Positions 14,485-64,000 of a stretch of 64,000 nucleotides of DNA are shown one piece after another (within the stretch, counting starts at the first letter, position 1; every line of letters begins with the position of its first letter). Source of the DNA: Schmidtea polychroa (Eukaryota); NCBI GenBank assembly GCA_044892525.1, contig CM097887.1, positions 2,108,001-2,172,000 on the forward strand, read 5' to 3'. A program made the position numbers and the translations under genes. The notes below the pieces were generated by a model that was given only the letters and a program-made list of their open reading frames with translations, made no database searches and was not told the origin of the DNA.

Positions 14485-16604
14485 ATGGTTAAAATCTGTG
14501 TTGTTGGGTGCTTACATGGTGAGTTAGACAAAATGTACGATGATGTTAGAGCAACCGAATTAAAATACGATTTTAAAACCGACATAGTATTATGTTGTGG
14601 TGATTTTCAGTCAATTAGAAATGAATCCGATTTAACTGTTATGAGTGCACCATTGAAATATCGTAGACTTGGTGATTTTTGGAAATATTATGCTTCAGAA
14701 AAATCTGTTCCATATTTAACTGTCTTCGTTGGAGGTAATCATGAAGCATCAAACTATCTTCAAGAATTGCCTTATGGTGGCTGGGTTGCTCCTGATGTAT
14801 ACTATATGGGTTATGCCGGTGTCTTGAATTTTATGGGATTAAGAATAGTAGGATTCTCGGGAATTTATAAACGTCATGATTATTACACCGGTCACCATGA
14901 GCATGCTCCGTATGATGACCAGTCAAAGCGCACTGCATATCATACAAGAAATATTGAAGCTTTTCGTTTAAAACAACTTAAAAAACCAGTCGATATTGTT
15001 TTGAGTCACGATTGGCCAAGAGGAATTTATAATTACAACCCAACTCATATAGGGCAGCTAATGAAAGAAAAACCGTATTTTATCGATGAAATTCGAGCAA
15101 ATACCCTTGGAAATCCAGCTGCAGAGGAGATATTAATGCATTTGAAACCTCGATATTGGTTTGCAGCACATCACCATTGCAAATTTGCCGCTCTCGTTCA
15201 ATTTCACAGCGCCGAAAACCCACAGAAAACAACAAAATTTCTCGCATTGGATAAATGTTTACCGTTCAAAAATTATATGCAATTCATCGACATTGAACCG
15301 CAACTGGAAATCGAACTGTGTAATGAAAAGCATTTGTCTCTTGATCCGGAATGGTTGTGCGTTCTCAGGGCAACCAATCATCTGATGTCGATTGCGCGTA
15401 CCACTTGCATCATGCCAATCGCAACCAATGAGGAAAGGTTCGCAGTTATTATCATAAATTATTATTAATCAATAATTTTATTAATTATTTTATTGATATT
15501 GTCTATTTATTATTATTAACTGATATTTATTATTAATAGTCATTATACATAAATAAAAAATTAATAATTTAAAAATATAATTATATTAATATTTAATTTA
15601 TTATTAAAAATTAATGATTAAAAAATATTTTTCATTTTTATTTCCATATTTAATAATTAGAATTTAATATTAATTAAAATAACAAATTATTTATTTCTAA
15701 TTTTTAAAATTATTATTCTATTAATTTTTTAATATTTAATAATTAAAAAAAATTAATTAATAATTAAATAATATATTTTTTATTTTTATTAATTATTTTA
15801 TTAATAGTTATTATAAACAAATAAAAAATAATAATTTAAATATTGAATTATTTACTTCTAATTTTTAAAATTTATTCTATTAATATTTTTAATATTTAAT
15901 AATTAATACAAATTAATAAAAAATAATAATTAAAAAATATTAATTTTATTACAAATTTTATTATTTTTTGAATTTATTGATTTGTCTAATTTATATTTTA
16001 TGATTTATTTTTAATTGGCTGATAAATAAAACCAATCTATAGGTCCGATTTTACTGCCACCGAGGAAGATCTGAAAGAATTGTCTGATTTATTTAACAAT
16101 CAATTCAAAATACCGAACAATTTTGAAGTGACGGCGCCAGTGCACCACGAGGAGTATGAGGATGTGTCGAGGCTCCCGAAACCGGTAGCGATTCACACCA
16201 ATCCACAGACAGATCTGATGAGTGCCATGTTGGAATTGACGAATCCGAATGCGGAATTCCTGGGCAAATCTTGCTCGCTTTTGGAAATTAGCAGAAAACT
16301 GAAGGAATCGAAAGAATCCGATGAGGAGAGTTCTGGTAGCGATGGTGGCGAATCATCTTGTGGTGGAGAGGATGATAATTGCGCTGCCGTGCCGGAGCTG
16401 ATGGGGGACGGAGCGAAGGGCAATAATCCAGAGGAGATCGATATAGATATATGTGATGAGGAGGGGGAGGGGGAGAACGCAATGTCCAATGACAACGGCA
16501 GCGAACCATTTGAGCAATACGATCCTGCGGATTACCCAGCCGATCAGAAGGAGGACAATGATGATGATGATGACGGGTATTGTCCCGCTGCTCCCTTTGT
16601 ATGA
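14485..16604 (+). CDS. DBR1: Lariat debranching enzyme; exons 14485-15437 and 16043-16604
   Basis: Metallophosphoesterase motifs GCLHG, CGDFQ, GGNHE, LSHDWP, WFAAHHH, TKFLALDKCLP. A phase-2 GT-AG intron restores NEER|SDFTATEEDL..FKIPNNF, the DBR1 C-terminal domain, followed by an acidic tail. Confidence 0.96.
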
Positions 16605-16936: not shown

Positions 16937-19669
16937 TCACTGATATCGATTATTTGGTGGGTGCTGACGGTTCTGTTGTTGCATGTCGCTGATCTGGTTC
17001 TCGGAGTAGGTCAGGCGCTGCTCGAGGATCGATACGGTCTAGAATATATATATATATATATATTGATTATCGATTATTGATCAATATTGATTACCTGAGT
17101 CAAAATATCGAGTTGACCAACAATGTATTGCAGTGTCGATGCAAATGAAGGCTCCATTTCCTCACGGCGACTCAATTGCTCCACATAGCTGCTGCTGCTG
17201 TTGACATTGGAATCGGGCGCCTGGAAATGCAAGATTACACCCAATTACACACAAATATATCAATAATGCTTACCCGAGCGAACATAGGTGCACCAATGGT
17301 GGTCACCTCAATGTCCCGAGGGGCCTCAGCGGGATGCCTGATCACATCAGATGAGAGAGCTGTCATGCATTTCCTGCGATCATTTGATCCAGACTTGCCC
17401 AATTGAATATTATCTGATCCGTCGGCCTTGTTGTGATTTGCAGTGCTGTGATTGGCTGGCAGTATTGCCTGATCTGAATTGATCGATCTGTCGCCATTGA
17501 GATCGTGCCTGCGCAGCTCCTGAGAACGCTTGATGATTGGCTGTGTGAATTTGCTGGTGGACTTGGTGCCAGTTGCTATGTGCTGCTGTGCCTGGTGCTG
17601 GGACTGGCCGGGATGCCCAGCAGCAGCAGTTCCTGGGGGCTCAGCCAATTGCCCTGCTTGCCACAGGAACACTTGGTGATCGGCACCTGCAGATGCGAAC
17701 ATCTCACCGCAGTGAGAGAACGCAGTGCTCAATATGGGGCCCTCGTGACCTTGCACCGTGTATAGCAGGCGGCCTTCCAGCAAATCATAGATTTTCATGC
17801 TGGAATCGTCACTGCTGGAGATGAGGAAATTTCCCGAGGGGTGGAAGCTGACAGCATTGACAGGGCCCGTGTGACCTATCGCGGTGTTATATGGGTACCA
17901 GCGCGTATGACATACTTGTGTAGTGCTGCAGCAATTTGTTCATCCTGATGTCCCAGATGTTCACATGGCAATCGGTGCCTCCCGATGCGATATACGATCC
18001 GTTTGGGTGGAACGCCAGAGACGGCACAAAGCCTCCGTGCTCCTGGAATGTGTGAATGCACTCTTGGTTATGTCTGTCCCACAATTTGATCGTTTTGTCA
18101 TCACTGCTTGACGCGATCAGCTGCCCGTCCGATGAGAACCTGAATGCATATTTATCACACAATCAAATGCTGCTATTTCCACTGGGCGCACCATTCCTAA
18201 TGATTTTTTATTTGCTGGGGATATTGATTGATGCTAGCGTGCTGATGGGAGATATTATTGATCCTAGAGTGCTAATGGGGGATATTATTGATCCTAGCGT
18301 GCTGATGGGGGATATTATTGATCCTAGAGTGCTGATGGGGGATATTATTGATCCTAGAGTGCTGATGGGGGATATTATTGATCCTAGAGTGCTGATGGGG
18401 GATATTATTGATCCTAGAGTGCTGATGGGGGATATTATTGATCCTAGAGTGCTGATGGGGGATATTATTGATCCTAGCGTGCAGATGTGGGATATTTTTG
18501 ATCCTAGCGTGCTAATGGGGGATATTATTGATCCTAGCGTGCAAATGGGGGATATTATTGATCCTAGCGTGCAGATGGGGGATATTATTGATCCTAGCGT
18601 GCAGATGGGGGATATTATTGATCCTAGCGTGCAGATGGGGGATATTATTGATCCTAGCGTGCAGATGGGGGATATTATTGATCCTAGCATGAAACACCTC
18701 AGTTAATGCGCCTCAGAATGGTCTGTGCCCGTAGATTAGCTAGAATCAATGGAAATCCACACAAAATCAAACCAAAAATCAATGTACCTGACGCATCTAA
18801 CCCAGTTCTTGTGCTCATTGAGAGAATATGAGAATTTCTGACGATGCATTTTCCAAACCTGAATGAAAAAGGTTGTAAAGTAGCCAATAGTGAGAATGGA
18901 TTCATTCATAAATCAACATGAAATGCATGAAACAAGGATTCCATGAGTCAATACAATCAAATAACAGAGTGACATCATCACACAGAATGACTCCCAGCGC
19001 CTCTCTATATCCCTTCAACCCAAATTAATTGAATAATCATTCATTAAATCATGAAATAAATATTCAAAATTAACCAATTAATTAATAGTAAACCTTGATA
19101 GTTTTGTCATCAGATCCAGTAACCATTTCTAGATTATCACAGGAAATATCAACCGATCTCACAGTGGCTGTATGAGCACGAAACACGAGGGATTCCCCTT
19201 TGCTGAATTGGTAAATCAAATCCTCAACAGTAAATATCATGGATAATAATGTCATTACATGCTTGGCACCCAAAGTCTGACAGTTTTATCTCTTGATGCT
19301 GATGCTACCAACTGACCTGTTGGTGAAAATTTTACTGACAAAATAGCATCCTTTAGAATTGTTAATTTTTTTCATTTTGCTAATTATCTAAATGTTACTT
19401 CGTGTCCAACAAATCGATATGCCCTAGTTTGAGGCTTGAAATTCCAGATCATTAGGCATGAATCAATTCCACCAGATGCTGGAAATAAACAGTATTTATA
19501 TAAAATAACCATTTATTATTATGAACCTAATTGTGAACTGTTGGGATTAAAATCTACACATGTTACTTTATCTTTATGACCTTTGAAGTGAACTTGGAGT
19601 TTAGGATCTTCCTGTAGTGTCATAGTATATTTATATTGTAAAAAATAAAATAATAAAGCAAAATACCAT
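16937..19669 (-). CDS. POC1: POC1 centriolar WD40 protein; exons 19669-19667, 19611-19527, 19478-19399, 19350-19259, 19202-19094, 18858-18788, 18139-17916, 17875-17274, 17220-17095, 17038-16937; 497 aa
   Basis: Spliced product starts [40 protein letters not shown], has seven WD40 repeats, and ends with the POC1 coiled coil [23 protein letters not shown]. All nine introns are GT-AG and phase-consistent. Confidence 0.96.
18218..18690. repeat. 30 bp minisatellite (~16 copies; gtgctgatgggggatattattgatcctaga) in POC1 intron 6
   Basis: Directly visible tandem units with ctg/cag and aga/agc variants. Confidence 0.97.
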
Positions 19670-22600: not shown

Positions 22601-25524
22601 TTTATTTTACTTTTTTATCATTTTATCAGTTTACTGTATATTTTAGTTTCAATTTTAAATTTATTCATTTAAAACATTTTCATATTATTAATTAATTTAT
22701 TACCGATTATTTTATTTATTATTATTTTATTTTCTAGTTAGATTTTTCGAATGCGATATTTCTCCTAATTGTGTTGGTGATTGCAACTTCTTGCGTGTCT
22801 TTATTTTATTATACGTGTTTTATTTATCTTCTATGTATTATGTATTTTAGTTTGTCTTATTTGGTGTATGAGCATGAATTTTAATTCAACTTGGTGCGAT
22901 TTTTATGTTATGTATTTCTGATTCATTCAAACAACTCTCAATTTTCGGTTCTAGCCCAACAAAATTAACATGCAGAAATTGTCCTGAAAAAGTTCTAAGT
23001 TAAGGCAGGAAAGTAACCGGATCAAGTGCACGAAGTATCACCACTAGAAGCAGTTAAGTGGTCGTATAATTAAAGTGTTCCCCAAATGATATTCTTTCGA
23101 AGTGTTGTAATAAGCAACTGAATACGTTTTATTTACATTGAGCGATTAGTGTCATTGTAATCGTTATAACCATTTGTGTTATTCAATAAAGTTATATTGT
23201 TCGGAATTCGTTATTGTTGAATAAAACACTCGGATTCTGATAGTGGTTATTAATTTGATAATCGCATGAGTCATACTTTTGTGGAGCAAAGACACTGACT
23301 CGCAGAATGAGTCATGATTCTTTCTGAATAAAAATATTATGAGTCATCTTCAAAAACTTTTAAGTTCCTTAAACAAAGAAATTGTCACGATGCCAAATTA
23401 GAAATAGTTTTCAAACAAAAGAAACTTTAAATATTATCATTTTAAATTTTGTTTAAATAATATTTTATAGATAAATCTAATTTTCAATAACTTTGCTCTT
23501 AATAACATTTTGATTCGATAATTTGTTCATGACGAAAACCTCGTCGAAAGGTTGGTCTTTCGTTTTGACATATGACTAACGCATTAAATTATAAAATTGC
23601 AATAACTATCCTATAGATAATTCTCTCTTTTACAATATTTACATATATGTTTTATTTGTATCAAAAGAATATTCCAGTATGAAAAGTACAGTTTATTTTT
23701 AACTGTGTCTTTACGCACGTCATTTGTATAAATTCATAATTTATAATCCAGCAGTTTCTTTGAGTATAAAGTGTTGTACTAAAGCCCTATTTCAAATTTC
23801 ATTTGACAATTCCTTTTATGTTAAAACTTTGCTTGAAAAATTTTTATTTCTCATTCCACGTGCTTTTTCTCTAATTTTCATATTTTTCAAAATTTTAAAT
23901 GTTGTCATGTAGACCAGTGATGGAGAACCTTTTTGACAAGAGGGTCACAATTGAATTTTTTTTGAAAATATCAACATGCGGGACAAGTATTATTTTAGTT
24001 ATTAAAATTTTAACAAAAAATTCATGTAAATATAATATGATTTTATATATTATACATGAATTTGATGTTAGGTTCGATGGGTAGTTACTCCAAAGCGTGA
24101 CTTCACTGGTATTAATAGGTTGCGTATATGATATTTATTAAACAAATAAATAACGATATAGATTTAAATATTTATTGAATCAAAACTAAATATATAATAT
24201 AACACAACTATTGAATAAAACAAAAGAAAACTGGCTGATTGCTAAAGTACAGATATCGGTTATTAAATCCGTCCTGTAGATTATTACTAAGGAGCTATGC
24301 TGGTCCTAAATGCACCAACAGCCAAATATAGGTGTTAAGGATAAAGAAGAGGGATTTCCCGAGATTTAAACGCGATACACATTAACCCAGAAAATTGGTT
24401 AATAGTTTATTTGTATAAGTCAAAACAGCTACCGAATTGTTTGCTGATGACTAACCCCTTTTTGCTTTAAACTAAATATATTTAATAATAATAAACTAAC
24501 TAATTATTTATTCTTGATGAATTAAATATAGATAAACCCGAAAATGGTTGTTATCTATTCCAAATTAGAGAAAATTCCAATTGAATTTAAGAACTTTTGA
24601 TGGATATTTATTTCACTTTACAGTAGGCTTATACAGTAGGCTTGTAATGTATGCTCAATCTGACTTAATTAAAAATTAAAAGTTGTCGCTTATTGTGCGC
24701 CTCCTTGTAATTCTACTAAAATTTTTGTCCGCTTTCTTCTTTTGCGTCCTTAATGTTCGTCCTTTTTCTCAAATTTTGATATCTATTTATATTATTTATA
24801 TTTTAATCTATTCTATAAATGGTAATTATTTAATTACTATTTTTACTACGTATTTTTATTTAAATACTATTTTTATTTATAATCTAAATATAGTAATTTT
24901 TATTTAGTATTTTTATTCTATTTCTTATTATAGCAATTATTAATGATTTATTTCTATTTTAAGTAATTATTAAATACTATTTATAATTTATCTTTATTCC
25001 TTTCCTAAAAACTCTTTATGTCCTTATCTTGGCTCCTATTGAACCCCAACATTGATATATATTCGAAAAAATTAGTATGATTATTATTTTCTAATCTAAA
25101 AAACAAAACAACTCGTGGGTCACTTGAATTCATTGCACTGATCAGTGTCTGACCCGTGAGTCATAGGATACCCGTCGCCGATGCAGACTCTACATATGTT
25201 TTATACATATAAAATGTGTATATAATACTCAATGACATTGAATTTCAAATACATTTTAAATATTTTAAATCTTAATTTTATATAATCTTCCTTCCTATAT
25301 TTTCACATTTTACAAAATTTTGATTATAATAAATATCTTTGTCAGATCACTTTTTCATGGTCAAAATGACCGGTAAAAAGACGAACAAAATAATATACTG
25401 GACATTTGTGTATAATTTGTCATTCTCATCATATTTACGGATAAAAGTAATTATGTATAGTTTTATTATCCAATAAAAATTATTATATTTTGATCGGTTG
25501 ATTTATATTTGAAAGTAATAATAA

Positions 25525-30209: not shown

Positions 30210-33200
30210 GGTTGTTAATATCGGTTTTTCGAGCAATCCGATTATCGTTTGTATAAATCCGATTTTAAACCGATTATCGTTTGCACTTTGCATAACCAAA
30301 GCTACTTACATTATTACTATTCACGCACGTGTATAGTATAATTAGTTTTATTCAAAGTTTATACCACACACAAGGAGAATATGAACTGACTGTTTATGTA
30401 AAAAGTTAAAGCATATAAGTAAATTTGTTTTCAATTTCTTCGGTAATTTTCCCTGTATATACTAAAGTATAAATCAAAATAAAACTTTCCGGTGCTGCGG
30501 CGGCCTTATTTTAAAATTAAACATAAACATATCGAAACCATAGATATCAAAAACAAAGATTCCAAAGTGTAAACATTTAAAAGTAAGTACTAAATTCGAT
30601 TTTATTTTTAAATATCAGACAAGTCCTGGTTCATATTCAAAAAGACCAAAGATTCTGCATGATCTGGAAGGAGCCGGTTACGAAGCTTGGTTATCAGACG
30701 TCCAGTGGCCGAAAATAATCGTTCCGATTGCACTGAGGTTGCAGGAATGCATAAGAACTTCCGGGCAAGAATAGCTGTTTTGGGGAAAAGTTTCATATTA
30801 TGTTTCCACCACTCCAGGGCTGTTTCACTTGAGTTTGTTGACCATGATGATTTGACGTAATATTCAAAGTCGGATTCCTCTGGCGCCTGTTGTGCTGCAC
30901 TATCACCAAGGAGAAACATAACTGCATCATGATTTGGTCGTGATCTTTTAGTTAGTGGGATCATGTTATCTTCATCCTGACTCGTCTTCGGCTGTTCGGG
31001 GCAATCTGGCAGCTGTCTGAGGAGATGACGGACATTTTCATACACCAGCTTTTTGAAATCGTCCGGAAATCCAGGAAGATGCTTATACATCGGATCGAGA
31101 ATTGATGCAACAACGCATTCGTTTTTTGCTGTTTCATTATTTTCTAATCCAAAACGACGTGAAATATTCTTAGAAAGATCTCTCTTAAATTCACCCATAA
31201 TGTCAGAATCTTCTTCTTTAATGGTTAAATGATTTTTCACGAGTCCCCATAACATGGGAAAAACACAAGAGGCTGATGGCTGGCTTTCGGCTGACATGAC
31301 GGACGGCACGATCTGCAACGCTTTTAAAACAGGGAGCAATTCAGTCATCAGTTGCCAATAATCGTCCTTCATGCCCAACGTTTTGGCATCGTTCAATTTC
31401 ACCACGTTTTTGTTGCTCAATACTGCAACTACTGGCCATCTCAGTTCTACTAGTCGTTCAAACATGTCATAGACGCTGTTCCAACGAGTCTTACAGTGCT
31501 GAATAAGTTTTAGTGGCGTTTTATCCTTGTCCATGGACAACTGTCTTTTCAGGAGCTCCCCCGTTGCCATTAGGCTATGTGAGAAATGTCCGACTAGTCG
31601 TGCTGCAGCTGATATACATTTGGAAATTTGATGATCCGTGACAACATGGGAGCCCATTGCATTATTGATGCAAAGTTGCAATTTATGCGCCGCACAGTGA
31701 ACGTCAAACCATCCATTGAGATTGCCTGTATGATTGATGTTGGATGCACCATCATGGACACATGCAACAATTTTTTCTTTTATTGACCATTCATCAGCTA
31801 TACTACATAGGTGGTCAGCAATGACGGCTTGTGTGTGGCGTTGAGTCATCAGAATTGTTCCAAGAACAGGCGTCATCATATAGCTTCATTGGTGACACTA
31901 GTCCAGATGTCGGTAGTGTTGACATTTTCATGGATATATTTCGACATTTTGACCACTAAATTATTTTTCATTGCTGTTAGTCGTGCTGTCATCGTCTGAC
32001 GACACGGAGGACGATATCCTGGCTCCACTATCGCCATCAATTCACGGAAGGATTTCGATTCCACGAGCGAAATTGCCAACATATTTTCGGAAATCAATCT
32101 CGCAACAGCAGCCGTAATTTTTTCCTGTTTACTACTCGGACAATTTCTTTGTGTTGTAATCAATGCAGTCAATCGTGTTTGAGTATTTGAAGATGTTGTT
32201 AATCCACCATGTTTGCTACGCAAATGTGCATGCAAACCAGTCGTAGTACCTCCACTCCTACTTATTTGCTGTGCACAGAGCTTACATTGTGCCATCGTCG
32301 CCGAAATTTTATCAAAATTGTCCCAGACGTCAGACTTATTTATACGGAAACCCATAAATTTAACCTGATTTTGTATTGATTTAGATAATATAAAAAATGT
32401 TTATTGAATATTACGTAATATTCAAACTAAACCGCAATTTTCAATTATATGGATTAATAACAGCTACTACGAGAGCAACTAACTGAATGAATGGAAATTA
32501 TATAACAGTTTATATGTTTATAGTAGATTTGAACCATGGATTGGACTTTCCAAAATCTTGTCATAAATTAAAATCCCGAAAATCAATTTACTTCGACCTG
32601 AGCAGCCTCTTAGACATTGTCAAAAGATCAACAAACTGAATAAATTTGAGAATGGTCGTCACCCAAACTTGAAGTTTGTCCTAGTGTCCAACTCTCTTCC
32701 ATATTTCAATGGGTAAACAACCAAACATTATGATTCGAGGAATGGCACATGTCTTTCGATCTCTTTACATCTGGCTTTCATGAAGATGATGCGGTATGCA
32801 ATTCAGTTTATTCTGGTTTTAAGTTAAAACCAGAATAAACTTTTAACCGGTTCGCAGATGCAAGATATCAGATTGCAAAATAGACCTTCACGGACTAAAC
32901 ACAAAATCGCCGACCTCGGCCACATCTAGTCCCTGTCAAGGAGGTTAATAGCTAAGCTTCTGTTATGGACTGCAGTAATCAAATCTTTGGTGGCCGATTT
33001 CGGCAACAAATATCAGGTTGCCAAACAAAACCGGCAAAATGCAAATACTAAAACACACAACCACAACCTTGGCCTCAGCTGGTCCCGATTAAAAGATTTA
33101 ATGGGCACAGTACCTGTCAGGGGCTGTATAAACAAATCAGCGGTTGACGATTACGGACATCAACTGACAAATAACTGGTCAGTCGGTGAGATATGTTGGA

Positions 33201-46283: not shown

Positions 46284-49200
46284 ATGAAAATATTTGTGAC
46301 AACTGAGAGAGATTCCAAAGATGGCCTTGAGATGGAGGTTGATGAATATTCACAAGGAGAGAATATTAAATATTATTTCAATGAAATTCATCAAGAAGAT
46401 CAAACATGGACAAAAGATTATTACCGATTAATATATAAAAATATTATCATAAATGATCACGACTTCATCAGGAAGTATAAAATATCAGATGGAGATAAGA
46501 TCTGGCATGGGAAAATTGAGAACTATTTGGAAAGGTTGATCAAGTATATGAGATATCATTTGATAATTTCCATTGATTCCAGTGATGATGTAATTGTGGA
46601 ATTATTCCTTGCAGGGACCATACCTAATTGGGTTTGGTTAATTATCAAGCTTTATGATTCTATTGACTCGATCAGATCAATTATTGAACGGTTTCAACCA
46701 GAAATTATTCATATTTGGAATAGCAAAGGTGATCAAATGATAGGCAATCAATCAATCACAGATATCAATGAGGATGGATATTATCGATTGATTGTGAGGT
46801 GAATTTTGATTGGTTGGTTGATTGTGAGGTGAATATTGATTGATTGTGAGGGAATATTGATTGGTTGGTTGTGAGGGGATATTGATTGGTTGTGAGGGGA
46901 ATATTGATTGGTTGGTTGATTGTGAGGGGATATTGATTGGTTGTGGGGAATATTGATTGGTTGTGAGGTGAATATTGATTGGTTGTGAGGTGAATATTGA
47001 TTGGTTGATTGTGTTGGATATTGATTGGTTGTGAGGGGAATATTGATTGGTTGATTGTGTTGGATATTGATTGGTTGATTGTGAGGGGATATCGATTGAT
47101 TGTGAGGTGAATATTGATTGGTTGTGAGGGGAATATTGATTGGTTGGTTGTGTTGGATATTGAGTGGTTGTGTTGGATATTGAGTGGTTGTGAGGTGAAT
47201 TTTGATTGGTTGGTTGATTGTGAGGTGAATATTGATTGATTGTGAGGGAATATTGATTGGTTGATTGTGAGGGGATATTGATTGGTTGTGGGGAATATTG
47301 ATTGGTTGTGAGGTGAATATTGATTGGTTGTGAGGGGAATATTGATTGGTTGGTTGATTGTGAGGGGATATTGATTGATTGTGAGGAATATTGATTGGTT
47401 GTGAGGTGAATATTGATTGGTTGTGAGGTGAATATTGATTGGTTGATTGTGTTGGATATTGATTGGTTGTGAGGGGAATATTGATTGGTTGATTGTGTTG
47501 GATATTGATTGGTTGATTGTGAGGGGATATCGATTGATTGTGAGGTGAATATTGATTGGTTGTGAGGGGATATTGGTTGGTTGTGAGGGGAATATTGATT
47601 GGTTGGTTGTGTTGGATATTGAGTGGTTGTGAGGTGAATATTGATTGGTTGGTTGTGTTGGATATTGATTGGTCGTGAGGGGATATTGATTGATTGTGAG
47701 GTGAATATTGATTGGTCGTGATGGGATATTGATTGTGAGGGGAATATTGATTGATTGTGAGGTGAATATTGATTGGTTGGTTGATTGTGAGGGGAATATT
47801 GATTGATTGTGAGGGGATATTGATTGATTGTGAGGGGTTATTGATTGATTGTGAGGGGATATTGATTGATTGTGAGGGGTTATTGATTGATTGTGAGGGG
47901 TTATTGATTGATTGGTTGTGAGGGGATATTGATTAGTTGATTGGGGTGAATTTTGATTGGTTGTGAGGGGATAATGATTGGTTGGTTGTGTTGGATATTG
48001 ATTGGTTGTGAGTGGATATTGATTGGTTGGTTGTGAATATTGATTGGTTGTGTAGTGAATATTGATTGGTTGGTTGATTGCGAGGGGATATTGATTGATT
48101 GTGAAGGGTTATTGATTGATTGGTTGTGAGGGGATATTGATTGGTTATGAGGTGAATATTGATTGGTTGTGAGGTGAATATTGATTGGTTATGAGGTGAA
48201 TATTGATTGGTTATGAGGTGAATATTGATTGGTTGGTTGATTGTGAGGGGATATTGATTGATTGTGAGGGGAATATTGATTGATTGTGAGGGGAATATTG
48301 ATTGATTGTGAGGTGAATATTGATTGGTTGGTTGTGAGGGGATATTGATTGGTTGATTGGGGTGAATTTTGATTGGTTGTGAGGGGATATTGATTGGTTG
48401 GTTGTGTTGGATATTGATTGGTTGGTTGTGAATATTGATTGGTTGTGTAGTGAATATTGATTGGTTGGTTGATTGCGAGGGGATATTGATTGATTAAGAG
48501 GGGAATATTGATTGATTGTGAAGGGTTATTGATTGATTGGTTGTGAGGGGATATTGATTGGTTATGAGGTGAATATTGATTGGTTGTGAGGTGAATATTG
48601 ATTTGTTATCAGGTGAATATTGATTGGTTGGTTGATTGTGAGGGGATATTGATTGATTGTGAGGGGATATTGATTGGTTATGAGGTGAATATTGATTGGT
48701 TGTGAGGTGAATATTGATTGGTTGGTTGTGTCGGATATTGAGTGGTTGTGAGGGGATATTGATTGGTTGTGAGGTGAATATTGATTGGTTGTGAGGGGAA
48801 TATTGATTGTGAGGTGAATATTAATTGATTGTGAGGTGATATTGAATGGTTGATTGTGAATATTGATTGGTAGATTGTGAGTTGAATATTGATTGATTGT
48901 GAGATGAATATTGATATGTTGTGAGGGGAATATTGATTGGTTGTGAGGGGAATATTGATTGGTTGTGAGGGGAATATTGATTGATTGTGAGATGAATATT
49001 GATATGTTGTGAGGGGAATATTGATTGGTTGTGAGGGGAATATTGATTGGTTGATTGTGTTGGATATTGATTGGTTGTGAGAGGAATATTGATTGGTAAC
49101 TAGACGTTGCACATAAATTTATTACACATAAATGAAAATTAATGTCCATTAATATTAGGCTGATTATCTTGCTCTGGAATCTAAGCAAAGTTATTATTTA

Positions 49201-56834: not shown

Positions 56835-59800
56835 TCATCGAAAATAATCATGTCCAAAATAATTATCATCTGCTGGATCATGAAAATCATCTGGATCATC
56901 TGCCGAGACAGGTTCTGTTGAATCTATGAATATATCGGTGTCACCACCCCTATAATAGCCATATGCCAAATTTTGATTTTTATCCACCCAATTTCGCTTA
57001 TCATCTCTAATTTTCATGGTTCTTTTATTATTTTTTATACTATAAAGTTGGTGATTCTTCGATGTTATTCAAAACTGAAGGACTGTGTATATTTTATCGT
57101 TTAAGTAACAATATAGATACGACTGATGTGTTAATCCAGTATCTTTCATACTAATCCCTTTAGCCTTCATACTTTCCTCATCACCCATTAAACTGTAACA
57201 TTTAGGTCTCAAGAACACCCAATCTTTATATAATAGTCCTTTATTCTCGTCTTTGAATTTACCAATGACAGAATCAAGGTTCCTACAATATAAAAAATGA
57301 TTTGGGTCATAATTCGAAGTGTCTAATAATTGATCTCTAATCATTGCAGATAAAAAAATGTCAAGACTACAATGTTTAATTTCCAAGAAGAAGGAATCTG
57401 TGTCCCCAGCAACAATATTAATTTCGCAGTTGAATTCGTCGCGATATTTTTGCAACTCTTCATACTGCAGCTAGTACATCCTAAGTTTGGATAAATCTAG
57501 TACAGTTTGACCAATGTAACTAGGTCTATCTAAACATACTGTATCCTTCCTCAATAAAACCGAAATCAGGTCATCATCGATTTTCGAGGATTTACGAAAA
57601 GTCGGTTTCGAACAGAATGTTAATAATTTCTGTGAAGAATTACACAGACGTAAATTAATACGTTTTTAAAGATTTTCAATAGTCTTCCCGTAAAGACTGT
57701 TGTTTAATAATTTATAAAAGTTTTGTCAAGTTTATTTGTCGACGCTGCTCGTAACGCCGTATTTGTGTTAATATAATTTTTGAAAATTCTATCTTGTTTA
57801 AATTTAATTGCTCTGTGTTTTTGATATTTTAACACCTAATTTAATAAATATTTACAGAAGCCTCCAATGAAGAACGTAGTTCCTCCTGGGGCTGTGTGTA
57901 AGCAACAGCTTCTCTATTTTCGAACCGGGTACACACATCTTTTCAGCGGCAACGGGAAGATAATCCAGTTTATGGTGTATTGACGTTGGTATTTCTAAAT
58001 CCACTTCTATGGTATAACCATAATCAAGCAGATCTAAATCTACCGTTGTTCATTCAACAATTATATTATTTAATAAATTATCATCTGTAACCCATTTAAA
58101 GTTACTGCATGCTAAAGGTTGACTTAAAGCCCAACCGTATAAATTATTTATATCTATGTAAAGCAAAGCGGTATCCGGGTCTGTTTTTACATAGTGTTTA
58201 TTTACAAAAGTTAGTCCACCACGGATACCGCCCTCAAAAAAGTTATACATCTCCATATCGGTGAGGAGCTCAATTGGAGAGTTTAAAGTTAATAATGCGG
58301 AATTCCAAGACATATCTGAAATCCCTAAGAAATTTAATGGCTCTAGCCAGTTATGAGCAATGGACTTAGCTCTAAATTGTTGGAAAAAATCAGCTAAAAG
58401 GAAAACATCAAGTTTTAAATAAACCATCATGTAATCTAAAAGTGAAGTACATTAGGTTTCAAGCCAAATTCTCTGAGCTGTCTCATATTCAGCAGGCGTC
58501 ACATCTTTCCAAATAGGAGGTAACTGATGAGTGTTATGCAAAACCTCTAAGGAAGTTGCGGCATCATAAGGAAAAATTCCCTTTGCATTGATTATTGTAC
58601 CCTGAAATTCTGATTCGGTCAAGGGTAAAGATGATAAAGTTTGGACAGCATTATTTAAGACTCGCTGACAAATTGATAAGAGTCTATAAATTTAACGGTT
58701 AATGAGTCAATCCTAGCAAAAAGACTAAGGAATTTCTCGCTGGTTAAAGGAATACAGCTAATATTCCATGAATGATATTTTGAAAGGCCAAATTTCAAGA
58801 TATGATGCAGATCATAATCCTTTAAATTATGAAATACTACAGGAAGGGTATGTCTAATTTGCCTCGACAGATTACAAGTTGTACAAGCGGCACCAAGATA
58901 TAGACCGGTAAAATGGTCATGGTCCCTAACTGGACTAGATAAATGTTTATTGCACAAATAGCATGATGTGCTGTTTTCAAACATTAATTGTTGTTCATCT
59001 GTAATTATCATTTTCGTTTGATAATTTTTATAATAATAAGGAGTTACAATATATTTCCCTATCATTTCAATTTCAGTAAGAAATTGATCGACGCAATTGA
59101 ACGACTTATAAATTTTTACGCCCGTAAAATTATTAATAAAAGCATACCAGCAGGTGACGTTGAAAGTATCGAGTGTCCTTAGGTAAGATAACCTCAAAGT
59201 CAGCATAAATAACAAAGGGAAGAGTGACTGTTTTACTCCAATCAATAAATTCTAAATATTTATTTTTAGGCAATGTGTACAAGGTAGTACCAAGCTGATT
59301 TTTATCACAAAGACCTCTATGTCTATTAAAAGCGTCATCATTCCTAAAACCGTTTAAACACCTAGGACACCACTGACTGCAAATCCTAACAGGAGTGATT
59401 GAACTATTCCTACAATTAAGGAATCTATTTAGGTCTGTGATTGCAAGATAATGATAATTATCATTCTTTTCAATTAATAATAAATTGATAGGTATGGCTC
59501 CTACTATCTTACTCCTGTATATTATATCAATAACTGCATCTTCATCAGAAATGTCTATCAAAGCCTTTTCGTTGTAAGTAAGAACATTAATACTATAACC
59601 TGGATTTTGTTGTTCAAATTTACTTATATTTGATAGTTTCATCGGCATATCATTAGGATCAAATTTAATATTAGAAAGATTGTATGAATTAGGGCGATTT
59701 CTATATTGCCTATTTATACTGTCATATTTAATAATTGATAAAAAACTATACAAGAAGCAGAAGTAGTCATTATTAACTAAATTAATGAGACAGCTTAAGT

Positions 59801-60782
59801 TTCTTAAAAATTTTGGGGTTTCAATAAAACTTCTGACACTTAACTGACTTATTTCAGCAAATTTAGTCAGAACAAAGCTTATGTATTCTATTTTATTGAT
59901 ATTCCAATTACTACCTTTCTCATTAATTTTAATTATTTTTTCATTTAAACGAGCAATACCTTCGTCAATGAATGTATCACTCCAAACTCAGGCGGAATTC
60001 GAGATTACAAAAGATTGTAACTCATCATCTTTAATGAATTCCACCTTTAGACAAAATTGAATTTTACATGATTTCAATTTATTTACATAGAAATTTAATT
60101 TATTTTATTAAAATGTCTGGTACAGAGACCGTTTTTAAATCTAAAGACGAAACGTCCATTTTTAACATAATATGATTAATATTTAAATCACTGGTGACAT
60201 CTACGACACCAAAACCTATTTGATTAATATTATTATAATTATTATAATTATTATTACTATTATTATAATTAAAGTTTAATTAATTAAAGTTTAAGATTTT
60301 TTTCATAAGATATTATTCAATATTGTCTGTTAAATAGTATCTAATAAGAAAACATCATATAATTTAACTAATATATTTAAATAGTACCATAAAAATAATA
60401 AAAGCATTAAATTATGATTTGAAATAATATAAAAATTATTAAAATTATTATTAAAATCTTCTTTTCATAATCGACTTTTCATATAAATTATTATAATTTC
60501 TTCACATAATAAAATCTTTTCATAATCTTCATAAATAATTACATATTATTCTCATAAATACATCTTTTCATAAATCTTCTTTTCATATAAATTTTCATTA
60601 TTATTATTTAAAAATAAATCTTTTCATATATAATTTACAAATTTTCATTATTAAAAAAAAATTAAAAAAATTATAACAATAAATAAACACTTACATTTTG
60701 TTCCTTTCGAAAGAAATTTCCCAGCATCAGAACCAGCAGAATCAGCAGAAGTATATATTACGTTTCGATCTAAAAGCCAAAT

Positions 60783-61292: not shown

Positions 61293-61716
61293 TCAACAAA
61301 TAAAAAACAAATCATACAGTATACATTTATTAACTATCAAATAGTTTTTATACAACAACCATACCAAACAGTGTTGACCACATGTTTGAGTCAATGGATT
61401 TTGAAACATAGTTTTATTATATACAATAGGTTTCCTAATTGTTTGCAGTTTTGATATCAACAAAGCAGGATAATAGAAACTCATAGGATCGAATACGAAT
61501 ATATTACTAGGTTTCACATATATAGCTATTCAATGTTCTTCACCATGATGAGACGAATGAGTATTGAAGATTATGGTTTGATTATTGCTCAAATAAAAAA
61601 TTTTATCGAGAGGAAAAACTCTTAAAAATTCATTTCCTAATATTTGTTTTCCAATTCGATTAACCTGAACAGAACTACTTTAATAAAATTAAACAGTATC
61701 AAAAAACTTACTCCAT
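61293..61716 (-). pseudogene. Adenain-type capsid maturation cysteine protease; exon 1 61716-61712, exon 2 61677-61293; one in-frame TGA
   Basis: Spliced translation: MDSSVQVNRIG..FLRVFPLD..IIFNTHSSHHGEEH*IAIY..FVFDP..QNPLTQTCGQHC, containing the His, Asp, Gln and Cys catalytic residues. Confidence 0.88.
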
Positions 61717-61743: not shown

Positions 61744-62960
61744 TTATACTAGCACGGTTCTATTTGCAGTAATTTGAACTTCATTTTCAGATACTGCATA
61801 TATTATAACATGTACCGGTTCTGTAATATCCAGTCGTATATTCCCGTTTTGTGGTAGTTGACTCGGATTTAAATCAAAATCGGGGGATAAAACAAATGTG
61901 AAAAATGGGTATTTGCTTTTAAATTCTTCTAGAGTTCTTCCACAATTCAAATTTTTATCTAAATATCCCATATTTCTAACAATACTCTGCATATATGTAG
62001 CACAGTAATTATCATTATCGAAATCTTGAATATGTTTCTCTATAATCATTATTTTTAGATAAAGTCAATGAAGTAACACTAAAGTTTTTGAAAATTGAGC
62101 TGGAAGCAGTATAAGACCCATTATATTGTGTTTCACTTTGAAATGATACCAGAATAAAATTAGGCATTCTTCTATCACCAAATATTTGTTCTTTATAGAA
62201 TGATGAATCACCTTTAGCAATAGCAGTTTGTACAATTTCCTTTGTTTTTAATGGATAAATTGCATATTTTGAATTAAGACCCAATTGATGACCAGCCAAT
62301 ACTGAGGGGTCTACTCGAACTCTTCTCACCAATAATTTTGCATCAACTAATTGACATATTGGTGCACCAGTTGCACTAGTAAGAGATAATGCAGAATCAG
62401 ACCTTTTCAGTCTAATGTGTACATTAACTCCCGGAAGTAAATATTTCGGTTGATCCATAAAATCGAGTTGTAATGATGAACACATGGTGAATAATTTTGA
62501 GCCTTTAACCCACTTTTCCTTTCATCATCTGTTGCTGCATAACCCATAGGTGTAAGACAGGTATGTTTAGTATCGGAATTGTAATTTAAAATAGTTTCTA
62601 TCAAAGCCTTGTGAATGAATGTATTATTTCCGCCCTCAATCTTGATATTATTAAATCCCAACACTACATCTTTAAACAGAGTATGAAACAGGAAATTGTT
62701 CGGTATGACATCCGCATTGGCATCCAAAACCTTTCTATCTTTATCTACAACCTTGATTTGAACAGTCAATAAAGTATCGTTCAAATCTACATATTCAGTT
62801 TGCGAACCATTAATATAAAACTCGATATCATTTCTACTATCGGTAATTGAATTTATAGGAAAAACTTCCTCAAAAGCCCCAAATTCTATTACAGCCTGGA
62901 GCGATGGTCTATCAAATATACATAATTCAGATTTACCACAAATAATTTTGCAAATATAGT
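61744..62960 (-). pseudogene. Polinton major capsid protein (double jelly-roll), two frameshifts (~62490, ~62040)
   Basis: CGKSELCIFDRPSLQ..IEFYING..YVDLNDT, NNFLFHTLFKDV, QPKYLLPGVNVHIRLKR, LLVRRVRV, PFFTFVLSPDFD, GNIRLD..VIIYA. Confidence 0.9.
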
Positions 62961-63280
62961 TTCATGTCCTTTCATTCGTTTGTTTATACGCGATATTCCA
63001 TGGCCTTTACGTTTTGGGGCTGGGGCTGGAGGCGTATCTTTTTGAAACATACCAGCAACTCCAGGTAGAACCTTCCCTAACTCAGCTAAAGCATTTGTTT
63101 TAAGAATGGTAATATTTTCTGTTCATTCATAATCACGTCTTTAGCAGTTTTCATATCAAAACTACCAATACGTTTAAGAATAGGAAGTGCAAATCACCCT
63201 ATTGTTTTTAACCAACCTAATCCGAAATGTTTACCAACGAAATATGGTAATTCACCGCCAGATTGGCTATCACTATACAT
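62960..63280 (-). pseudogene. Small Gly-rich/basic Polinton protein between minor and major capsid genes
   Basis: MYSDSQSGGELPYFVGKHFGLGWLKTIG*FALPILKRIG..AKDVI, with a basic C-terminus. It resembles the QxGG-type small proteins found at this position in such elements. Confidence 0.6.
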
Positions 63281-63296
63281 ACTAATAATATCGGAA

Positions 63297-63944
63297 TTAG
63301 CCATCTACTTTACGAAAATGTAATGTCAAATGAGTTTTAGAATCTTTCGGAAAGTTTATAAGTTTTCCACTATCGTCACGAATATTTATTTCTATATTGT
63401 TTATACATGAGCTTGAAATCGGTAAATACATAGGATTATCTATATTTATATTGACAACTTCATCATGTTTATATCTTCCAATCCACACAGATTTCAATAG
63501 AGGAACACTGGAATCACCGACAATGATGGGCTCAATAATATTAGTATATATAAACATTTGTTGATGATTTTCAAGTATTCTTGGTTTACGTATACCAGCC
63601 GATTTTTCCCGATATTGTTGCTTCTCTAATCTAAGAGTATTTGTCAAATTTTTATCAAATGTAACTTCGCAAATGTCATCATTCAAACTGAAGGTAAATA
63701 ACAAATCTTTCACAATGTCCAAACTTTTAAATATGTGTGAACAATTGTACTTTAAATATTTAAGTAATACATCAAGTTTATCAATATATAATTCGTCAGC
63801 AAAGGCGAATGATTCTTCAACTTCATTATTATACGATACTGATATTTTGATTTCTTCTTTCATTACACTGTTTGCTTCAAATAGATCAAAACGTAATAAG
63901 TATTCTGTTTCCATAACATCATTTTTCAACTTATTGCAACCCAA
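63297..63944 (-). CDS. Polinton minor capsid (penton-like) protein, 5'-incomplete
   Basis: C-terminal MFIYTNIIEPIIVGDSSVPLLKSV..NPMYLPI..IEINIRDDSGKLINF..LTLHFRK is the Polinton minor-capsid signature. Confidence 0.85.
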   Translation of the reverse strand: MGCNKLKNDVMETEYLLRFDLFEANSVMKEEIKISVSYNNEVEESFAFADELYIDKLDVLLKYLKYNCSHIFKSLDIVKDLLFTFSLNDDICEVTFDKNLTNTLRLEKQQYREKSAGIRKPRILENHQQMFIYTNIIEPIIVGDSSVPLLKSVWIGRYKHDEVVNINIDNPMYLPISSSCINNIEINIRDDSGKLINFPKDSKTHLTLHFRKVDG

Positions 63945-64000
63945 TAGTTTGGCATCTTCAATATATTCGAATATTATTGTAAATGTTTTAAAAAATCACA

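Follow-up and report, generated by a model that had tools for sequence, protein, structure and literature searches.

A 64,000-nucleotide (nt) stretch of the Schmidtea polychroa genome (contig CM097887.1, positions 2,108,001 to 2,172,000, forward strand), referred to here as the window, contains on its minus strand a virus-like element of the Polinton/Maverick, adintovirus-like kind that extends from approximately 56.9 kilobases (kb) to the window end. In the direction of transcription, the element comprises a 340–350-codon gene, a 116-codon gene, a capsid gene of approximately 406 codons, a protease gene, an AT-rich spacer and a gene for a family B DNA polymerase (PolB). The subject of this analysis is the protease gene, whose coding sequence is divided directly behind its start codon by a short segment with the borders of a spliceosomal intron. 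The parts of this gene are as follows.

61293..61716, minus strand: adenain-type (Peptidase C5) maturation protease gene, from start to stop codon, broken; 89% identical to protein P0001 over the piece searched
61712..61716, minus strand: protease exon 1, ATGGA, i.e. the start codon and the first two bases of codon 2; ATGRA in 19/19 loci
61675..61711, minus strand: predicted 37-nt phase-2 GT-AG intron, GTAAGT...AAAGTAG; acceptor conserved in relatives, alternative AAG ending at 61678
61293..61674, minus strand: protease exon 2, which ends with the stop codon; codon 2 is completed by the first exon-2 base (GA+T = Asp), and the joined exons match intron-less relatives

At the 5´ end of the gene, the minus strand reads ATG (61716-61714), GA (61713-61712), GTAAGT (61711-61706), an AT-rich stretch, AAAG TAG and T TCT GTT CAG. 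Two tandem acceptors lie in frame: an AAG ending at 61678, which delimits a segment of 34 nt, and a TAG ending at 61675, which delimits one of 37 nt. The original prediction for this DNA, which used the first of these acceptors, had quoted the region as ATG GA/GTAAGT...AAG/T AGT TCT GTT CAG, and these letters are present as given. Exons joined at its borders begin MDSSVQVNRIGKQ.. and run in frame with the His/Asp/Gln/Cys region. Exons joined via the TAG begin MDSVQVNRIGKQ and stand in residue-for-residue register with the intron-less relatives P0024 and L013. The prediction was also right about the unspliced frame: in the window, the frame of exon 2 meets a stop codon immediately before the conserved N-terminal motif, with no in-frame ATG between the two.

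Compared with intact sisters, the frame of the window protease is closed by one in-frame stop codon and one frame-shifting indel. This copy is a pseudogene in a heavily decayed element, and nothing is expressed from its present form. Its intron differs by one base from that of the intact sister L077.

A short GT-AG segment shared by 19 loci

The relatives of the gene were collected by searching one protease piece against 1.84 billion representative proteins, which returned 31 proteins, and by a word-based search with the closest relative, which returned 8. At the DNA level, the closest relatives and 65 metagenome loci were compared; a search of IMG/VR found no relatives. The two window protease pieces alone gave no match in Pfam. 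They are too short for such a match, and family membership was therefore settled through the relatives. P0001, to which the C-terminal window piece is 89% identical, carries PF00770, and P0024 (26.0 bits) and P0033 (24.6 bits) pass the cut-off of this family (21.3 bits). A profile of the family (A2) matches adenain (1avp) with an E value of 1.1e-7 and the S273R protease of African swine fever virus with an E value of 1.4e-3. Across 25 aligned relatives, the protease His, Gln and Cys are invariant and the Asp is nearly so, at positions that align with the adenain residues. The protein is thus predicted to be an adenain-type cysteine maturation protease of 111–115 residues. Most relatives have 110–125 residues and start at one alignment column with M, followed by D/N/H/Y and then S/T; the N-terminus M(D/N)xxQ, which the original prediction had given for such proteases, was found in the relatives. 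A phmmer search of the PDB with one window piece gave a chance match only, which was set aside. Two MetaClust proteins fuse the C-terminal/middle part of the protease to other sequence, P0002 to a tubulin-like domain (PF00091 recorded) and P0022 to an unrelated tail that may resemble histone H2A; both probably result from chimeric assembly or from read-through of decayed copies beside host genes.

Nineteen distinct loci, including the window, share the arrangement ATG-RA/GT...AG/T (C once in place of the last T) just behind the capsid stop codon. The GT and the AG at the segment borders are invariant (19/19). The donors are GTAAGT (11 loci), GTAAGA (3), GTAATT (3), GTGAGT (1) and GTATGT (1), with a purine at position +3 in 17/17, A at +4 in 16/17 and G at +5 in 14/17 loci. 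The acceptors are TAG (15 loci), CAG (2) and AAG (2). Exon 1 reads ATGAA in 13 of 17 loci and ATGGA in 4 of 17, and L077 and L078 also have ATGGA. The original claim of a protease gene split by a short GT-AG intron right after its start codon is therefore borne out in 19 loci that share the structure, as is the part assigned to exon 1, which with its ATG and two further bases would supply the initiation codon. For L002, a reading as ATG/GTAAGA with an intron of 65 or 75 nt was rejected, since ATGAA/GTATGT...TTTTTAG/T (47 nt) fits the family pattern; its exons joined over 47 nt give MNTFQIDTILKR, close to the intron-less L053.

The segment between the conserved borders varies in both length and sequence. 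Its lengths are distributed as follows.

37 nt, 6 loci; 38 nt, 3 loci; 39 nt, 3 loci; 40 nt, 1 locus; 41 nt, 2 loci; 42 nt, 1 locus; 43 nt, 2 loci; 47 nt, 1 locus

The sister copies thus retain GT/AG around a segment that tolerates indels (37–47 nt), as had been proposed for a genuine intron. Modulo 3, the lengths fall into classes of 7, 6 and 4 loci (n = 17); all three classes are occupied, and the segment is therefore free of reading-frame constraint. The identity of the interior between loci is 0.61, compared with 0.59 after shuffling, and its A+T content is 0.85, compared with 0.64 in exon 2 (17 loci each). Compared with L001, a sister of 91% identity, the window differs at 12 of 28 interior bases and at 31 of 300 bases of exon 2 (Fisher p 3.8e-5); upstream of the intron, 8 of 80 bases differ. 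Two intron haplotypes (window and L077; L001 and L078) lie between the nearly identical exons of these four close sisters. The segment is retained in all fetched contigs. Its recurrence in 18 other distinct loci argues that the arrangement is more than chance. On this evidence, we consider it probable, at roughly 85%, that a clade of Maverick/Polinton-type elements carries a U2-type GT-AG spliceosomal intron of 37–47 nt in phase 2 of protease codon 2.

Reading frames, exceptions and alternative explanations

In 18 of the 19 loci, the donor itself supplies TAA or TGA (ATG RAG TAA/TGA) and ends the unspliced ATG frame after two codons, which leaves room for a dipeptide only. No in-frame ATG precedes exon 2 behind the nearest stop in 12 of 17 loci, and none occurs between the acceptor and the catalytic His in 14 of 17. 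The joined frame, by comparison, stays open for 111–115 codons in 18/18 relatives and covers the protease His, Asp, Gln and Cys. Its translation begins M(D/N)(S/T/A), with Ala in one locus, in register with intron-less relatives: L005 begins MNSEQLDQIG and L003 MNSIQIEYIG, and the intron-less P0024 and L013 begin MDSLNVQKIGKK and MDSLQIDKIGRK. In 32 intron-less loci (L013–L072), the second codon is of the NAY type (D, N, H or Y) in 29 cases, S/T follows in 30, and the conservation of the start region may lie partly at the nucleotide level.

The same structure is reflected in the open reading frame (ORF) calls. P0032 and P0034 are started at TTG, P0001, P0278, P0035 and P0007 are extended upstream through the intron zone, and the protease call of L073 is missing altogether. 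P0032 was considered as a continuous, ATG-started sister and rejected, because its apparent initiator methionine is a TTG inside the intron.

The best-surviving alternative dispenses with splicing. The protease would then start at a non-AUG codon, arise by termination-reinitiation, or be produced as a fusion to the capsid protein by frameshifting or readthrough, and ATGRAGTAAG would be a two-codon upstream ORF or some other signal. The position of the protease ATG, which abuts the capsid stop at a distance of -1 to 4 nt in 10 of 17 loci, accords with such coupling, and a survey of animal viruses mentions possible Hexon-Adenain fusions via frameshifting (bioRxiv 10.1101/2024.03.25.586562). The locus L007, described below, shows that the segment is workable as an untranslated leader with a two-codon ORF. 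However, this explanation leaves unaccounted for the invariant GT and AG that border an unconserved segment whose length varies by non-multiples of 3, and the constant recreation of Met-Asp/Asn by ATGRA and the first base of exon 2. The segment also carries protease-frame stops in most loci. We consider translation without splicing unlikely.

A second alternative concerns the 3´ border, namely the 34-nt intron (61711-61678) of the original prediction, with its AAG acceptor and a product beginning MDSSVQ... This AAG lies in frame not only in the window but also in L077 and L078, and AAG serves at the conserved acceptor position in L014 and L078, which indicates that it is usable in the clade. 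However, the 34-nt AG is limited to these three loci and is absent from the other 16, L001 reading AAAT at that position, whereas the AG 3 nt downstream (61675 position) is invariant in 19/19. The N-terminus of the 37-nt product also has the length of that of L013, P0033 and most intron-less relatives. The predicted length was therefore corrected: the conserved intron in the window is best placed at 61711-61675 (37 nt), the 34-nt form is very unlikely to be the intron of the family, and it would be at most a minor tandem-acceptor variant in the window/L077/L078 sub-lineage.

The two remaining explanations retain next to no probability. A coincidence in a dead gene, in which the ATG of the window copy was lost by decay and the upstream ATG, GTAAGT and AG arose by chance, draws on the state of this pseudogene and on an AT-rich region in which short motifs are easily found, but the same arrangement is present in the intact sisters L077 and L078 (91% identity) and in 16 more distant intact relatives. 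Translational bypassing, in which the ribosome would hop over 37–47 nt as in phage T4 gene 60, fits the stop directly after the would-be take-off codon and the comparable size of the gap, but the landing codon does not match (AGT/AGC precedes TCN, not GAG/AAG) and the gap borders are canonical splice signals; we know of no precedent for a take-off at codon 2.

The distribution of the segment was compared with the relationships of the elements. In a capsid protein tree, the intron-bearing loci and L013 form one clade in 60/60 bootstraps, and L013 groups with a subset of the intron-bearing loci, also in 60/60; the outgroups are all intron-less. The short protease alignment gives the same picture. 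In more distant relatives (L019–L072), an ATG is located at or beside the capsid stop, without the intron segment. Sister copies with a continuous ORF, which the original prediction had named as evidence against itself, do exist in L007 and L013/L018, as exceptions nested in the intron clade. On the most economical reading, the intron arose once, at the root of the clade, and disappeared at least once (L013/L018).

Several points weigh against a conserved spliceosomal intron. The segment is precisely missing from L013/L018, where the capsid stop is followed by ATG GAT TCT, as after an exact loss. In L007 (L007:94-145; P0033), a homologous 37-nt segment is kept, and its 3´ end reads ATGAA instead of xTTAG. 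The acceptor is gone and a continuous ORF begins MNSVQ.., with ATGAA forming a 5-nt direct repeat around 32 nt; L007 could be a reversal or a relic of the origin of the intron, e.g. an insertion with target duplication. An in-frame upstream ATG is kept in 5 of 17 loci (L001, L002, L005, L016 and L025), and L078 has an open zone like that of L001, so that an unspliced, N-terminally extended protein may be made in these six. A candidate branch-point motif (YTRAY) 8–25 nt from the intron 3´ end is no more frequent than in shuffled sequence (10 of 19 loci, 7.5 expected), although the very AT-rich sequence gives the comparison little power. The 37 nt of the window intron are fewer than those of the shortest host intron read in the window (40 nt). 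The trees are neighbour-joining only, the intact relatives are metagenome and read-archive assemblies (environmental DNA), and the removal of the intron is itself something that we infer from the DNA. Samples with intact copies include the ENA assemblies ERZ2272507, ERZ2272493 and ERZ25039515 and the runs ERR14374380, SRR25018252 and SRR21671982.

The intron appears to be a property of the protease gene. The original prediction had proposed that the whole lineage uses host splicing to supply initiation codons, and this generalization did not hold: in the two near-full-length relatives, L073 and L075, only the protease gene is arranged in this way, and the other core genes are single uninterrupted ORFs. 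When L073 and L075 were scanned for GT..AG segments that lie close to an ATG and open a long frame, the protease was the one convincing case, beside three weak candidates in L075.

The element and its surroundings in the window

The other recognizable genes of the element, and a second protease relic elsewhere in the window, are as follows.

61744..62940, minus strand: gene for the major capsid protein (double jelly-roll), broken by at least 2 frameshifts, with ~406 codons when intact in relatives; outer bounds of three aligned pieces in two frames
62946..63298, minus strand: remnant of a conserved gene of 116 codons, interrupted by 1 stop and one or more frameshifts; identified by its match to L017:1392-1739 and by gene order
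63306..63995, minus strand: C-terminal part of a 340–350-codon gene running to or over the window end; 30–39% identity to L017:336-1352, L073:7176-8234 and L073:8234-9244
56952..60104, minus strand: gene for a protein-primed family B DNA polymerase that includes an endonuclease VII domain, heavily broken by 14 or more in-frame stops and one or more frameshifts; identified by PF02945 and the PolB of L073 and L003
6054..6164, minus strand: isolated relic (~110 nt) of a second protease copy, without N-terminus and intron; 87% identity to L077:1690-1807

The protease, capsid and PolB genes are all broken, and the window element is a fossil. Its capsid stop codon is located 27 nt upstream of the protease ATG. 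The window PolB matches PF02945 at 26.8 bits, above the cut-off, and PF03175 weakly, below the cut-off; it is 59–62% identical to the PolB of L003 and L073, and its N-terminal part, up to ~60650, is past recognition. The 340–350-codon gene is related to two adjacent genes of L073. No match to an rve integrase was found in the window, and none to an FtsK/A32-type packaging ATPase; as the element continues beyond the window end, the integrase gene may be located there or have disappeared. No further element genes were found near the relic at 6054-6164, and a tblastn match of the N-terminal protease piece at 22788-22832 was rejected as chance.

The nature of the element is clearer in its relatives. 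L073 (18,985 nt) and L075 (28,127 nt) carry PolB, an rve integrase, a TATA-binding-protein-like gene (PF00352; L073:3689-4267, L075:5296-5466), the capsid gene and the protease. The integrase domain PF00665 was found in L073, L075 and L076, and PF03175 is recorded for L075. The A32-type ATPase is represented in L073 and L075 by faint precomputed PF04665 matches only. The capsid protein, from a 406-residue family with 143 clusters, matches PF21738 weakly. An AlphaFold2 model of the capsid relative P0156 (predicted local distance difference test 89.2, predicted template modelling score 0.88) is a double jelly-roll, and Foldseek relates it with a probability of 1.00 and E values of ~1e-14 to the capsid proteins of Paramecium bursaria chlorella virus 1 (Vp54), mavirus, Sputnik and iridovirus. 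Among viral models, a protein in a Cotesia bracovirus record ranks first, ahead of a MELD virus protein and adomavirus LO7. Bracoviruses harbour a Maverick.

Two further features of these relatives were noted. L075:3952-4941 is a MATH/TRAF-like gene; in the window, 7001-7609 is a host TRAF-type zinc-finger ORF. The MATH/TRAF-like and TATA-binding-protein-like genes of the relatives may be cargo of the virus or belong to flanking host DNA. In L073:12605-13828 (minus strand), a second 407-codon gene of capsid-gene length lies inverted, 1.4 kb past the first, which could reflect a large inverted repeat, two head-to-head elements or an assembly artefact.

The flanking DBR1, WD40 and hAT genes point to a metazoan host. 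Two introns of the WD40 gene, read directly in the window, measure 40 nt (GTATGT..ATAG) and 53 nt (GTAAGC..CCAG), and such lengths speak for the compatibility of the short protease intron with the host. The host DBR1 gene (14485-16286, plus strand) begins with an exon of 327 codons and contains an intron of ~600 nt. Its closest relatives in the database, from an annelid, tapeworms and insects, are only ~56% identical, and the host lineage is therefore poorly represented in the protein collection. A hAT-family transposase at 30608-32355 (minus strand) is formed by two adjacent ORFs, with a BED zinc finger followed by a hAT dimerisation domain. Two tandem arrays are also present. The first, at 18208-18690, has a 30-nt unit, adjoins the 5´ WD40 exons and contains long spurious ORFs on both strands; the second, at 46814-49097, consists of ~100 copies of the 22-nt unit TTGATTGGTTGTGAGGTGAATA, with an extreme skew of G over C (0.6–0.8). 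No Rfam family was found in the window at gathering scores.

Relation to known systems and implications

The protease belongs to the same family as that of Polintons and adintoviruses, with His, Asp, Gln and Cys in adenain order, and it is found in the same gene company (double jelly-roll capsid, protein-primed PolB, rve integrase and a weak A32-type ATPase). The PolB of the element differs from those systems in its endonuclease VII domain; an OTU-like domain is located at the N-terminus of adintovirus PolB (PMC8502044). The core genes of these elements are described as intron-less. The ORFs of vertebrate Mavericks are reported as intron-less, 'in agreement with Kapitonov and Jurka (2006)' (PMC8097293), nematode Mavericks have introns in cargo genes only and intron-less core genes (bioRxiv 10.1101/2022.07.12.499685), and splicing is not mentioned in the adintovirus paper (PMC8502044). 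In contrast, one clade here has a conserved, putatively spliceosomal intron at codon 2 of the protease. A literature search, which left several key papers uncovered, found no earlier report of such a protease intron. The core of the original interpretation stands, with its 3´ border corrected, its scope narrowed to one gene and the window copy recognized as dead.

Two other kinds of intron have been reported in related elements. Introner transposons occur in dinoflagellate Polinton-like proviruses (PMC12166617); both are spliceosomal introns within Polinton-like elements, but introners are mobile, scattered copies, whereas a single orthologous intron, at a fixed codon and without a repeat family, is found here in elements linked to an animal genome. 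Group I self-splicing introns of 309–376 nt occur in protist polinton-like viruses (PMC12220804); in both cases an intron is located near a polinton-like capsid gene, but the group I intron is a catalytic RNA of that length, and the segment described here has 37–47 nt and GT-AG borders.

The adenoviruses offer a further parallel. They are DNA viruses of the nucleus and rely on host splicing for their late messages, and the maturation protease described here, beside the capsid gene and on the same strand, is homologous to the adenovirus enzyme, although it has 111–115 residues as opposed to 204. The mode of splicing would differ. Adenovirus ORFs stay intact, and splicing joins a common leader to acceptors that precede each of them, whereas in the present clade one very short intron interrupts the coding sequence itself, 5 nt after the A of the ATG.

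The host would transcribe the element in the nucleus, and its spliceosome would take out the intron. Because the ATG lies 1–4 nt after the capsid stop in most members, the late transcript is taken to cover both genes, and protease output would be tied to its splicing. The lineage most likely needs the host splicing machinery to make its protease. A more tentative proposal, to which we give rather less than even odds, is that the mini-intron is a functional switch that makes protease production dependent on, and dosed by, host splicing of the late capsid-protease transcript. If so, adenovirus-like use of the spliceosome would have arisen independently in a Maverick-type virus, the 37–47 nt length would indicate hosts with very short introns, and the clade would hold a rare traceable intron gain with loss in two ways, by precise removal in L013/L018 and by acceptor loss with a new ATG in L007.

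The finding also bears on how such elements are annotated. The core genes of Polintons, Mavericks and adintoviruses are routinely annotated with prokaryote-style ORF callers. These callers place the start of the protease wrongly and give products that begin at TTG, are truncated or reach too far upstream; surveys that rely on ORF calls will under-count or misalign the protease in the intron clade. The length of the intron fits host genomes with very short introns, and its distribution suggests intron turnover within a virus lineage, with one gain, one precise loss and one retained segment without an acceptor. A conserved intron in a core virion gene would show that an animal-associated clade of these elements is expressed via nuclear splicing, like the adenoviruses.

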